64,000 bases of DNA from NCBI GenBank assembly GCA_977017575.1, contig CDRNVI010000002.1:372001-436000 (forward strand). Reading direction: 5' to 3'. Position numbers and translations under genes: made by a program. Shown here one piece after another: positions 2,414-16,242 of the stretch. Each line of letters opens with the position of its first letter. Position 1 is the stretch's first letter. Source of the DNA: Paramoeba atlantica (Eukaryota; Protista; Discosea). The notes under the pieces are model-generated. The model ran no database searches, had not been told where the DNA came from, and saw only the letters and a program-made list of their open reading frames with translations.

Positions 2414-2589
2414 GTGTGTGTGTGTGTGTGTGTGTGTGTGTGTGTGTGTGTGTGTGTGTGTGTGTGTGTGTGTGTGTGTGTGTGTGTGTGTGTGTGTGTG
2501 TGTGTGTGTGTGTGTGTGTGTGTGTGTGTGTGTGTGTGTGTGTGTGTGTGTGTGTGTGTGTGTGTGTGTGTGTGTGTGTGTGTGTGTGT
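2414..2589. repeat. (GT)n microsatellite, 5' flank of retroelement 1
   Basis: Pure GT dinucleotide run. Confidence 0.99.
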
Positions 2590-2615
2590 AAAGATACAGT
2601 TTCTGTACCTTGTTG
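2589..2615 (+). other. 3' 27 nt of SL-like exon at 5' end of retroelement 1
   Basis: TAAAGATACAGTTTCTGTACCTTGTTG; identical to copies at 33010-33045 and 38144-38179; resembles the kinetoplastid SL 3' half ACAGTTTCTGTACTWTATTG; followed by a T tract, not a GT intron. Confidence 0.85.
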
Positions 2616-2672
2616 TTTTTTTTTTTTTTTGTACTACGTTGTACAGAATGTTATGCGTCTGTAGCCCCTAAT

Positions 2673-5600
2673 ATGGCAAGCTCAGACGTTCCTGCACAAG
2701 CATCACGCGGGGAACGACATGTGAGGGTTAAAAGCACCACGTGTACAACATGGACTACGTTCGCTAGCATTAAATCAGCCGCTGTCAGCCCACTTGTCAG
2801 ACAGTTTTATCCGAATCCTGAGACCGGTCGCACCGCCCTCACTCACGCGCTTGATAAAAGTAAACCTGCACGCGGACTCGTGGTCGAGTCAGCCGAACTA
2901 TCTAGATATAGAATTCGACACCGAGGAACGAATGAAGAATGGAACTACTACTCAAGCATTGCAGATCTACATACCAAGCTGTTCTCTTCCACGTATTCGC
3001 GTGTCGACTCTCTCAGCCGCGCTCTCGCCAGCTACTTTAAGGGATCCCCTCCAAAGCATCTCCTTCCCTTTGACATTGAACCATTGCACGCAGAGCGCCA
3101 AGGAACTGCACCACCACGAATTGCCACGGAATGCAAGCACAGCTGCAAGAGCAAGGAAACGTGCTCCCACTTATGTTGTAAGCGGCACCTGGAATCATAC
3201 GAAACTATCAAGTCGGACGCGGAGCCCCAAACTGTGCCCAACAACACTACAAACAACGAGTGTAAGCACCTCTGTGGCGACAAACGTACCTGTAAGCATG
3301 TATGCTGCAAACGGCACTTGACCTCTGAGCGACTAGAATTCCAAACTGCGGATCCACCGGACCCAACCGAATCCTCGCAGCATCATGAAAATCAGCTTCC
3401 GCAAGCACCTATCGGCGGAGTCGAAGAATGCAAGCATATCTGCACGAACAAACGATCATGCAAGCACTTGTGCTGCAAACGACACCTCACGACCACCTTC
3501 GCCGGCCCCGACGCTAGTTCTACAATGCTAACCACGGAAACCACCAACTCCCACATTGAAATTAGTTCGACCCAAGTCCCTCCTCCCCTCAGCGAGCCGG
3601 AGCCCCCCTCAGACCCTACACCTATCACGTCTCCTCCAGTGGGAAACCCCCTCCCGACGGTAAGTACGGCCTACGGCACACTTCATTCAATCGGCAGTAC
3701 TATCGGAACCTATATTGTACATGCCGCCCGCCAAGTGCTAGCTGGAAGTGCTACCCCAGAACAGGAATCGCACCCCATCGGAGCCCATGTACACAACCCA
3801 TGCAGCAACGTCAGGGAGGACAATATCGAGAAAGGACCACAACACCGCGCATCCGCCGGCCCGGTCTCGCCTCAAGCGGCCTCGCCCACAGAGTGTAAGC
3901 ACATCTGCACGGACAAGCACACGTGCCGGCACCAATGCTGCAAACGACACCTGGGTATCGCTTCATCCGAACAGCAGCGTAACACTACTGAAACTCAGCC
4001 CACAGGTGACGCGCTCCCCGCACCGCTTTCCCCACCGCGCGGAAGCACTGCAGCACCCATACCTACCCTTCCTGATACGTCCCTACCTACCCTTCCCAGC
4101 CCACGACTCACAGAAGCCTCGGAACCAAGCGACGTGCAAGATGCAACCGCTCCCTGCAAGCACGACTGTCTAAATAGATTCTCATGCAGGCACCACTGCT
4201 GTAAACGAAACCTCCCCCATCCAACGTCCCGTGCTAGCCTCTTAGCAGCCGCAGCAGGGATTGCTGGTTGCCGCATGAATCTGAAGTTAAACTACAATGT
4301 GTGGGAAGTAGCCGATACACATGCCGAAGAGCTATTCCTTCGCTTTCGTATACAAGACGTTCAAAGCAAATCTGAGGCCGAAGAAAATGTGACTCTACTC
4401 ACAGCTTGCATCGTCGTAAGTTGCGCCCTTGCCGCCACGCGAGAACATGGGGATCACGGAATTACACTTCGACAACGAGGTCCCCCGCAGTGCCTCCGTC
4501 GACGCCCTATTGCTGCCGAAAAGGCGCGTAGGTTGCTTGAAACCGAGGCGTACCTCCTCCGCAAAAAAGCGAGGCACGCAACTTCGTCTGACCGTACCAG
4601 GCTTCTAAGGGAAGCGAAGAGCGCCCAATCAGCAGCAATCAACTTCTCGAAGGAAGCGGAAAGGGTACGAACCCGACGAGCGCAACAAGAAGCCAACCAT
4701 CGTTTCGCGAGAAATGCCTGGGCGGCTGCCACCGAAGTGCTGGAGAGACCGACGGGGGAAAGCACAGTGCACAAGTACCCGACATGCGCGGATACTGATG
4801 TCCTCGAGCATTACAAGCGCGAACTCAAAGCGTCACAATCGAAGGCAATGTTACCAGACCGTTCGCACCTCCCTGGGAATTCTATGGCGGAACAACATTA
4901 CTGGTCTGATATCACACCAGGCGATGTGACACGGGCTGCCATGAAAAAGAAATCTTGTTCAGCCCCCGGGGAGGACGCCATTCAGAATACTGCACTAAAG
5001 AAACTCAAATCTCTTCACCCCCACATCGCACACTGCTTCAATAACCTCCTTCGATGGAGAGTGTGTCCCACACAGTGGAAATCGGCCATCGTAAAATTAC
5101 TCCACAAGGGTGGGGATGATAGCAATCCCAAAAACTGGCGCCCAATCGCCCTTACGTCATGCCTAGGCAAGCTGTTCCATTCCATTATCGCCTCAAGCAT
5201 CACCGAGCACGTAACGAAGGAATATATTCTGGACACCAGTGTCCAAAAGGGGTTCCTACCGAAGCTAGCAGGATGCATAGAACATACAGCTGCCATTAGC
5301 CAATGCGTTCGCCACGCTAAACAGAACAGAAAGCCCCTATGCATGGTTCAGTACGACCTAACGAATGCCTTTGGATCGGTGCCACACGAGATTATCCTTG
5401 CTGCGCTCAAGTGGGCGAGGATAGACTCAGTCATTGTTGAATACGTCGAGCAAATGTACCAAGGATCATCTCTTCGCTTGAAACTCGCAGGTGGTCTCTC
5501 TGAACCCATCCCAGCCCAAAGAGGAGTCCTACAGGGTGACACTCTCTCGCCAATCCTGTTCAATATGGTCATGGAAGTTGTCTACCGCTACATCCGCAAA

Positions 5601-14228: not shown

Positions 14229-14232
14229 TATA

Positions 14233-15790
14233 CAGGGGTGAAAATCCCATGGTGGGGGGGTCTAAAATTCGTAAAATTTGTCCAATTTTGGAAAATAATA
14301 GCGCGTTCGAGAGCTCTCGCAGAGTTGTATGTTTTAAGATAGGCAGTTTGCGGGGGTTAGGGGGGTACCCCCCTTTGATGGAAGGGTCAAAAACACGATT
14401 TGCAAATTTGAAAAACTGTAAAAAATGGTCAAAAATTACCCTTAATACCCACAGGAAGACCCGTTTCGCTCAATAACGATGCGACAACGCTTGCGGAAAC
14501 TGCTCATCGTGTTAATACATTCTTGCTTGCGTTCTGATTGTAATCTTTCGAACGCTGTCTCAATGGCCGATACTAATTCAGCCCGATTCTTGGGTCGAAG
14601 ATCATTTTTGATGCTGTCCATGGTCCCCCAAAGGTTTTCAATGGTGTTTAAATCGGGGGATTTTGCAGGCCAAGAGAGTACATTAATACCTTCGTTACGA
14701 AAGGTTGTTCGCGCAGAATTATGAACAGGACAATTATCCATTGCAACGACTCCAGATGGGTGGCGCCTCAAATAATTTAAAAGTCCTTTGCGCTTCTTCA
14801 TGGCGTCATTAAAAGCATCCCCTGTTACAGTTACTTTTCGGCCGGAAGGGTCGTGGGAGGGAAAAATGTGTAGACGAAATCCATGATTTAAACTGACCCC
14901 CATCCACACCATGACGCCGTTCCCTCCATACCAAGGTTCTAGCTCTCCCTGCTGTTCCTTGGCGGGGTCAGTCTTCCGGCAAAGGTAAGTAATTTTGTTT
15001 CGTCCCCTACCGCAAGTGAACTTCTTCTCATCGCAGAAAACAATTTGTCTCAGTTGGGTATCTGACCAAGTGAGCATCTCAGAACAAAAATGCACTCGTT
15101 TCCTCTTGTGTTCATCGGTCAGTGCGGGCTTTCTTTTTAAAGTTCGCATGATCATACCATGGCTCTTCATGGCGTTAACCAAAGTTGGTCTTGAACACTG
15201 AAATCCAAGAAAAAGCACAACTCTATGGAGTGCACACCAGTTCTCAATCCCGTACGGGAGGTCACGGTATCCCTCATCAATGAGGCGGATAGCTGCTTCG
15301 TGCAGCGCAGGGGTACTGACAGGAGATGGGCGTGAAATAGGAGAGCTTTCCACGTCTCCAGTGTTCTCATAGCGTATCACAAGACGTTTTACTGTATTTT
15401 CGTGGACGCCGAAGTTTTGGGCTGTCCGAGAATAGGACCCTGTCTCAAGATAATCTGAGACAAGAAGCATACGGTGACTTGGTATCACCCGTGCGGGGGA
15501 GGAATAGGACCTGTCGCTGAGTACACCACGTGAGGTTCGGGAACGAATCCGTTTCTGGGGCATATAGTGCTAATATTGACTGAAAAACAGCTAAAAACTG
15601 AAAAAACGTAAATTTGGGCAAGAAAAAAAATCACGATTTTTTTGGTCTCATCGTTTCATGTTGAGTCACAGGCCGCAAATAGTGCTAAAATATACAACTC
15701 TGCGAGAGCTCTCGAATGCGCTATTACTTTCCAAAATTGGATAATTTTTACGAATTTTAGACCCCCCCCACCACGAGGTTTTCACCCCTG
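14233..15790 (-). mobile_element. Tc1-like transposon (DD32E), complete, with ~100-bp TIRs
   Basis: TA-CAGGGGTGAAA...TTTCACCCCTG-TA; intact transposase inside. Confidence 0.93.
14442..15563 (-). CDS. IS630/Tc1/mariner-superfamily transposase, 373 aa
   Basis: N-terminal HTH; FCDEKKF, VMVW, MDNCPVH, WPAKSPDLNTIENLW. Confidence 0.93.
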   Translation of the reverse strand: MPQKRIRSRTSRGVLSDRSYSSPARVIPSHRMLLVSDYLETGSYSRTAQNFGVHENTVKRLVIRYENTGDVESSPISRPSPVSTPALHEAAIRLIDEGYRDLPYGIENWCALHRVVLFLGFQCSRPTLVNAMKSHGMIMRTLKRKPALTDEHKRKRVHFCSEMLTWSDTQLRQIVFCDEKKFTCGRGRNKITYLCRKTDPAKEQQGELEPWYGGNGVMVWMGVSLNHGFRLHIFPSHDPSGRKVTVTGDAFNDAMKKRKGLLNYLRRHPSGVVAMDNCPVHNSARTTFRNEGINVLSWPAKSPDLNTIENLWGTMDSIKNDLRPKNRAELVSAIETAFERLQSERKQECINTMSSFRKRCRIVIERNGSSCGY

Positions 15791-16242
15791 TATATATATA
15801 TATATATATATGTGTGTGTGTGAGGGGGGAATATTAATAGGAAGTAAAGCATATTCTCAACACGATTGGGGTCACCCGCATTGGGAAGTGCTCCGCCCAT
15901 GGGAAAAATCAGAAGACGTATAATAAATTAACAAGGAGTGAACTGAAGTCTAAGGCGGCATAAATAAGTGCAGCATAAATATTTTGCTTTTTGAACACGA
16001 AAAAGAAGCATCGGAAATATTTATAAACTACTTTTCCAGATGCACTTGATAACATTGAAGAATTGGGAGCACAACGATTATCAATTTAATATACCGTCAA
16101 AGTATTTACCAGCAAAATAAAATCATTGGAATAAACTTTTTGTTGTAAAAATTGGCTGAATGATAATTTACAAAATTTACTTTTCAGCGAATCGCATCGT
16201 GTTATTGATATTGATTAGGGATTTGGTTTTTATTATTTTCAA

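Follow-up and report, generated by a model that had tools for sequence, protein, structure and literature searches.

An intact R2-group retrotransposon at TG microsatellites in an assembly of Paramoeba atlantica

Two divergent retrotransposons without long terminal repeats (non-LTR elements) of the R2 group, E1 and E2, lie in one TG microsatellite within a 64,000-nucleotide stretch (hereafter the window) of the Paramoeba atlantica assembly GCA_977017575.1 (contig CDRNVI010000002.1, here C2, positions 372,001 to 436,000), which raises the question of whether the repeat is what such elements seek, what they produce, or merely where they met. From our analysis of the three genomic copies of E1 and of one allele that lacks it, the places where E1 integrates are (TG)n.(CA)n microsatellites or positions just downstream of these, in every case with TG upstream on the sense strand. 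We assign a probability of about 0.7 to the reading that E1 is an R2-group retrotransposon with a TG target, acting by the scheme of finger binding, nicking and target-primed reverse transcription (TPRT) that is set out below. Tandem arrays were located with Tandem Repeats Finder (TRF), and the short terminal (TG)6 was read off the sequence directly. The locus (2414-15822) runs in the order (GT)88, E1, (TG)136.5, E2, a (TA)n run with a nested Tc1-like train, and (TG)6 [Table 1], and the unique DNA to the left of (GT)88 ends in CACCAGC. A preliminary description, made from the letters alone, had placed TG on both sides of E1 and at the start of E2, followed after the Tc1-like train by (TA)n and (TG)6; both placements were confirmed, by the perfect (GT)88 and (TG)136.5 adjoining E1 in the TRF output, and by TRF together with the sequence in the case of E2, with (TA)10.5 at 15791-15811 and (TG)6 at 15811-15822. 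It had also given both elements the same terminus, of which the likeness stood and the identity did not: E1 begins with AAAGATACAG (2590) and ends with CACTATGATTAAATGA (7277), E2 ends with CACTATGATAAAATTAT (~11214), and their terminal 14-mers differ by one mismatch.

We queried the whole assembly (45.7 Mb in 248 contigs) with both ends of E1, with the 3' end of E2 and with the terminal 14-mer. Three copies of E1 were found (C2, C12 and C15), which are 99.7-100% identical and have open frames of 1526-1542 codons. Many loci are doubled with near-identical flanks (99-100% identity in the pairs C2/C12, C15/C53, C74/C24, C59/C26 and, on the 3' side only, C55/C6), and the assembly therefore holds both haplotypes. 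The C12 locus is the allele of the window, with flanks 99.7-99.9% identical and E1 copies that differ by 5 single-nucleotide polymorphisms (SNPs). The C15 copy is set apart from both of these by 11 SNPs and one 48-bp indel and, since C2 and C12 are allelic, there were two independent E1 events, both at TG. The 5' junctions of the two alleles differ, the GT array being followed directly by AAAGATACAG in C2 and by TTTCT and then GATACAG in C12. We considered on this account (AAA versus TTTCT) whether these copies might be independent insertions, and rejected it, as they are separated by 5 SNPs only and share all 11 differences from C15.

The second event supplies a natural pair of filled and empty sites. 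On the sense strand the filled C15 allele reads (TG)23.5, 20 nucleotides (nt), GT with two partial repeats of the spliced leader (SL)-derived head with which E1 begins, E1 itself, and unique DNA; the partial repeats copy the first 11-12 nt of the element, and the 20 nt equal the empty-site flank save for a G-to-A change in the last array unit. The empty allele, on C53, has (TG)10 followed by 18 nt that it shares with C15, after which the downstream DNA of C15 sets in at once, and the 5' flanks of the two alleles are 99% identical over 545 bp. E1 thus entered 18 bp downstream of a (TG)10 that was already in place, with neither duplication nor deletion. No TG follows the C15 copy on its 3' side, where there is unrelated unique DNA, and TG stands upstream on the sense strand, in the same orientation, in all E1 copies. 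This observation upholds the view that the repeat was a target in place before E1 and disposes of the alternative named in the preliminary description, a TG tail encoded by the element and present only at its 3' end: TG is upstream in every copy, absent 3' at C15 and already present in the empty allele. C15, unlike C53, also has a repeat of ~480 bp (70 candidate matches, 95-98% identical) inserted 53 bp downstream of its E1 copy.

Long TG arrays are scarce in this genome. A (TG)15 30-mer matched the whole assembly 361 times on the forward strand and 16 times on the reverse; the forward matches in the window (195) and on C12 (166) add up to exactly 361, which places all of them at the E1 locus, while 9 of the 16 reverse matches are at C15 and the other 7 come from one or two unexplained arrays. 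TG arrays of at least 15 units are therefore all at E1 loci, save for these one or two on the reverse strand. Counting arrays of at least 10 units with two phase-aware patterns (11 + 15) gave 26 in 45.7 Mb, six of which are at E1 loci, and shorter runs of at least 4 units numbered ~4 in ~82 kb of unrelated loci. As the arrays with 20 bp of surroundings make up ~1e-5 of the genome and the orientation is the same, two E1 events at TG are not due to chance. The arrays at E1 loci are perfectly pure and measure 23.5 to 136.5 units, and essentially all remaining arrays are shorter than ~21 units; at C15, 10 units in the empty allele compare with 23.5 in the filled one. The cause is either a preference of E1 for long arrays or a lengthening brought about by its presence. 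A simple addition of TG during integration at C15 does not account for it, as the array and E1 are held apart there by 18 bp of unique DNA.

Judged from its sequence, E1 is a young and intact R2-group retrotransposon, with one open reading frame (ORF), a reverse transcriptase (RT), a CCHC motif and a C-terminal PD-(D/E)XK endonuclease. RVT_1 is the sole Pfam domain in the ORF, with no endonuclease of the apurinic type. The CCHC motif has the form CPIC...H...C, and the endonuclease motifs that follow it are RPD (6837), ELT..PWE (6885) and ERKRAKY (6927), of which the RPD, ELT and K residues line up with those of the R2 protein 9nl3. The assignment of both E1 and E2 to the R2 group as endonuclease-bearing elements was borne out; in E1, the RT as well as the CCHC and endonuclease regions align with solved R2 proteins.

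Upstream of the RT, E1 carries five Cys/His fingers, and the E2 family at least five with tails of the KRH/KRN/KRP type (mostly K-R-H-L); in sister families (42-47% identity) the fingers number two or three and the tails are different. None of the 119 external relatives from our protein search has such fingers, the Pfam (E <= 10) and Protein Data Bank (PDB) sequence searches with them returned no match, and the motif was matched only 20 times among 1.84 billion representative proteins. Two finger-bearing proteins, P0121 and P0122, are on contigs with neither a leader head nor an adjoining TG array, the nearest TG to the P0121 gene being a single 4-unit run ~1 kb away. The head of E1 derives from the SL RNA genes, which are arranged in tandem ~297 bp apart on C24 with an exon of ~38 nt ending in CAGTTTCTGTACCTTGTTG and an intron beginning with GTATGAGAAG (GTATGAG at its start), an exon/intron pattern that we take to be that of kinetoplastids. 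The genome thus possesses a kinetoplastid-type spliced leader, and the host looks kinetoplastid-like. Of the SL exon, only the final 26-30 nt are found in E1, its sister families and the short element X described below, and the SL head with its T-run matches at least 242 places in the genome. At the other end of the element, a module of TCTC, a hairpin of 5-6 bp and TGA was predicted in eight of nine 3' ends, from about six families, that were folded one by one (a MAFFT-based consensus fold of eight ends was misaligned and predicted nothing). The stems vary by family with pairing kept (UAGUGA/UCACUA, UGCAG/CUGCA, UGCGC/GCGCA and UGCCU/AGGCA), and the ninth end, that of the decayed window E2, has lost its hairpin. 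These predicted folds suggest that the conserved 3' hairpin is likely an RT-binding element. The metagenome contigs scanned held no exact-pattern match to the 3' terminus of E1 or of its family.

The E2 copy in the window is of another age. Its protein is 61% identical to that of E1 over the C-terminal 467 amino acids (aa), 66% in the RT piece and 38% in the N-terminal part, with 63-68% identity at the DNA level; at such low identities the pair is not a recent tandem duplication, and the earlier claim of two divergent subfamilies in one microsatellite stands. E2 carries one frameshift and two in-frame stops, and it is 5'-truncated, as its start falls in the middle of the block of Cys-finger codons; the C71 copy of this family reaches further 5' and adds three more fingers. 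Other E2 copies have 2 to 3.5 TA units where the window E2 has (TA)n, and a related family of the same organism ends directly in (TA)16. On these grounds we read the (TA)n run, whose first part is at 11213-11224, as probably the 3' tail of E2 itself, and (TG)6 as the rest of the target. The block at 11225-15790, which is bounded by TA on each side and runs from CAGGGGTG to CACCCCTG, has at least two further inner ends and DDE_3 and HTH_Tnp_Tc3_2 transposase pieces on both strands, and was therefore taken to be a nested Tc1-like train.

The TG array of the window was thus entered at least two times, by E2 (old, 5'-truncated and decayed) and by E1 (recent). On the C12 haplotype only, the array between E1 and E2 also houses X, a 551-bp element (C12:566763-567342) with at least 423 candidate matches genome-wide at 96-99% identity. 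Its first 26 nt are the stretch of spliced leader that also opens E1, and its 3' end is formed by the TCTC-hairpin-ATGA module of the superfamily; an Rfam search with X gave nothing credible. In its structure X looks like a non-autonomous, SINE-like (short interspersed element-like) rider on the machinery of this superfamily. Insertions into this single microsatellite therefore number three (E1, E2 and X), in addition to the C15 event elsewhere. A protein identical to the 1501 aa of E1 is on record in an ENA assembly, where the same locus is present. In that version (ERZ24900291, ctg3877l), 18 nt of the interior of X separate the TG array from the 3' end of E1, which reflects either a third haplotype or an assembly artefact.

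To account for these features we infer a scheme in which the N-terminal array of five Cys/His fingers would read the TG duplex, the endonuclease would nick the bottom strand within ~20 bp, and the RT, placed by the conserved 3'-terminal hairpin, would prime cDNA from the nick, i.e., TPRT as in R2. The partial SL repeats at the C15 5' junction may be template jumps at the 5' end of the RNA; such repeated partial heads point to an RNA that begins with the 26-nt head and not with a full, freshly added leader.

Several observations weigh against this reading. The independent E1 events are only two, ~20 other arrays of at least 10 TG units have no E1 or E2 (judged by the coordinates of the DNA search), and the role of the fingers is one that we only infer. 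The C15 insertion is not within the array but in an imperfectly alternating run of purines and pyrimidines 18 bp away from it. Those arrays that are at E1 loci exceed every other array in length 2- to 10-fold, and causality between length and insertion could run either way. Beyond E1, a TG run of at least 4 units was absent within 600 bp of the E2 copies at C55/C6, C100, C74/C24, C59/C26 and C71, and likewise of a 160-bp copy (C59/C26) of a third subfamily, E3, which has an intact 3' end in ordinary DNA.

The suggestion of a conserved TG-targeting lineage consequently fails on these E2 and E3 copies, some of which are unevaluable or transposon passengers. The C74/C24 and C59/C26 copies of E2 lack their last 15-19 nt and the C71 copy is rearranged, so that their original flanks are lost to view, and those at C55/C6 and C100 are found just inside the subterminal repeats of a DNA transposon with terminal inverted repeats (TIRs), of which they are probably passengers. 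We had entertained these two as independent hits on one target, and abandoned this because both are placed just within those subterminal repeats. This transposon has a subterminal 17-mer, ATGCATTATAAATGTGC, in 68 exact copies, often in inverted clusters (C100:55125-57705 and ~35 other loci), and some of its copies hold an E2 3' fragment just inside one end. An E1-like 5' fragment (C56:231804 / C31:30575) coincides with none of the 26 arrays of at least 10 units. A preference for TG is therefore demonstrated for E1 only, and is likely for the single E2 insertion in the window.

Might the elements prefer alternating purine-pyrimidine (Z-DNA-prone) or simple repeats in general, TG being just the commonest such tract that E1 came upon? 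E2 at a TG/TA boundary, the related family that ends directly in (TA)16, and the C15 insertion, 18 bp beyond its TG run in imperfectly alternating sequence, would all fit such a habit. However, (TA)n occurs only on the 3' side of the elements and varies from 2 to 16 units by copy, as element tails do, and pure TG lies upstream of E1, with one and the same orientation, in both of the independent events; we consider a general preference of this kind unlikely. That the arrays are products of the elements, made or expanded during integration (e.g., from read-through UG tails or by slippage at priming), would explain why arrays of more than ~21 units are all at E1 loci, why these are 100% pure, and why the filled C15 allele has 23.5 units where the empty one has 10. 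This is nevertheless quite improbable, given that a (TG)10 is already there in the empty allele, that 18 bp of unique target DNA stand between array and E1 in the filled allele, and that the C15 copy has no 3' TG. Expansion of the array after insertion may still have occurred in addition to targeting.

Mere coincidence, by which E1, E2, X and the Tc1-like elements would have gathered in a transposon-rich nest (e.g., in tolerated or open chromatin), draws some credit from the density of other mobile elements across the window and from the neighboring repeat insertion that sets the C15 haplotype apart from C53. Yet three elements lie within the repeat itself and a fourth event is 18 bp from a TG repeat, when all TG arrays together amount to ~1e-5 of the genome and the orientation to TG is constant, and we hold it to be very improbable. 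The reading that E1 targets TG accordingly remains the one that we prefer. A wider picture may be sketched around it. The RT-endonuclease region of E1 has at least 995 candidate matches genome-wide at 40-45% identity, many with open frames of 1500-1860 codons, which is indicative of a large, apparently active radiation. Conceivably, this is a private radiation of HERO/NeSL-like elements that all have the SL head and the covarying 3' hairpin, in which a modular, novel finger array sets the target, and the five-finger, KRH-tailed branch of E1 and E2 reads (TG)n, could mobilize X in trans and drives the only long TG arrays of the genome; we offer it tentatively and would sooner doubt it than assert it.

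Table 1. Features of the TG-microsatellite locus in the window (positions are those of the window).
Feature	Position	Strand	Basis
(GT)88, upstream half of the TG microsatellite target	2414..2589	+	TRF, 88 perfect copies
E1, full-length intact R2-group non-LTR retrotransposon, 4688 bp	2590..7277	+	Boundaries; three near-identical genomic copies
E1 5' head: last 26 nt of the spliced leader (2590-2615), then T15	2590..2630	+	Agrees exactly with the final 26 nt of the SL exon, C24
E1 ORF, 1501 aa	2673..7178	+	ATG at 2673, stop at 7178; ORF list and translation
Five C-x-H-x-C-x5-C-x-H-x-CC fingers, each followed by K-R-H/N-L; proposed target-binding module	3132..4202	+	Motif coordinates
Reverse transcriptase domain	5112..5894	+	Pfam RVT_1, E = 8.5e-28; aligns to solved R2 RT
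CCHC motif (6615-6668) and PD-(D/E)XK restriction-like endonuclease	6615..6947	+	Aligns to the same region of R2 protein 9nl3
3'-terminal module: TCTC, 6-bp hairpin, then TGATTAAATGA	7250..7277	+	Folding; covariation between families
(TG)136.5 separating E1 from E2	7278..7550	+	TRF, 100% matches
E2, older sister-subfamily copy, 5'-truncated, one frameshift, two stops	7551..11214 (3' end approximate)	+	Sequence comparison
First part of (TA)n run, probably the 3' tail of E2	11213..11224	+	Sequence; related family ends in (TA)16
Nested Tc1/mariner-like train at TA within the (TA)n run	11225..15790	.	Terminal inverted repeats, inner ends, DDE_3 and HTH_Tnp_Tc3_2 matches
Remaining (TA)n, then (TG)6, downstream remnant of the original TG array	15791..15822	+	TRF and sequence

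Relatives of E1 were sought with its protein, and the best 120 matches were considered. The closest are two sister families from the same ENA sample, followed by metagenome proteins and then by proteins of fish, lamprey, sea urchin and scorpion with identities of 25-31%; a search of the ESM Atlas gave generic animal RT clusters only. In a FastTree phylogeny of 88 sequences, E1 and its sisters fall in a group with 100% Shimodaira-Hasegawa (SH)-like support together with elements of fish, lamprey and sea urchin and from metagenomes, and the Myb-bearing R2 proteins lie in another group. The Rhinichthys relative carries ELTVPWE...ERKRAKY. The HERO-like character attributed to E1 in the preliminary description is plausible: these motifs and the grouping with fish, lamprey and sea-urchin elements would fit it, in a tree whose sequences included no labelled HERO, Togen or NeSL reference. 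The gene model of the lamprey relative spans 20 kb, and the Engraulis and Rhinichthys relatives have ~60-bp direct repeats at their flanks or a head-to-tail second copy and are not in TG arrays, and so were not recognizable as Togen. With the other RT ORF of the window (16739-19612), E1 shares 22% identity.

Site-specific R2-type elements are under development as gene-insertion tools, for which the choice of target is the central question. The present case offers a natural before/after pair of one site and a simple-repeat target with a measurable offset of 18 bp. As finger number and tail residues vary between sister families, the module suits swap experiments. The trypanosomatid and Bodo saltans clades listed in a 2025 survey are CRE, INGI, VIPER and TATE only (PMC12278014), and E1 would add a non-CRE endonuclease lineage to these four kinetoplastid transposon clades. 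The long TG arrays at E1 loci also raise the question of whether such elements grow their microsatellites.

Among known systems, the nearest in behavior are the fish Togen families (Togen-1_DR and others), which are (TG)n-specific (Kojima and Jurka, 2015; PMC4640811). Like E1, with its two independent events and one empty allele, Togen bears a restriction-like endonuclease (RLE) and has a (TG)n target, and it is placed near HERO/NeSL as E1 groups with elements of fish, lamprey and urchin, away from R2 proper. Togen is known from fish only, whereas the host of E1 appears kinetoplastid-like, and the likeness is one of description. Some HERO families are microsatellite-specific within a mostly non-specific clade, and the position of Togen between HERO and NeSL is unsettled (PMC4640811). 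The HERO clade (HERODr, HEROFr, HEROTn, and sea-urchin and leech families) has, like E1, a single ORF with RT, CCHC and RLE, and the fish relatives of E1 share the ELT.PWE...ERKRAKY endonuclease motif; E1 differs in its host, N-terminal module and 5' head. For Dong the microsatellite is (TAA)n, a different repeat from that of E1. The Dong/R4 elements are RLE elements that insert into microsatellites, with target duplications reported for R4 (PMC3636483) and none at C15.

The CRE clade (CRE1/2, SLACS and CZAR) shares with E1 the host group, the combination of RT and RLE, and a connection to the spliced leader. CRE elements occupy a fixed site inside SL RNA genes, with target duplications and poly-A ends (PMC12278014), whereas E1 lies outside SL genes, in or beside TG arrays, with no duplication at C15/C53, and at its 3' end TGATTAAATGA follows a hairpin and there is no A-run; no SLACS, CZAR or CRE protein was among the best 120 matches of E1. 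R2 (9nl3, 9dou and 8gh6) aligns with E1 in the RT, CCHC and PD-(D/E)XK regions and is associated with sequence-specific TPRT, the mode proposed for E1, and the blunt insertion of some R2 elements (PMC3636483) matches that of E1 at C15. R2 proper has a C2H2/Myb N-terminus and a 28S rDNA target, whereas E1 has no Myb or C2H2 domain by Pfam, five Cys/His fingers of another type, and a TG target. In essence, (TG)n-seeking behavior was already known, and what is new in E1 is the host group, the finger module, the leader-derived head, the filled and empty alleles of one site, and the covarying 3' hairpin.

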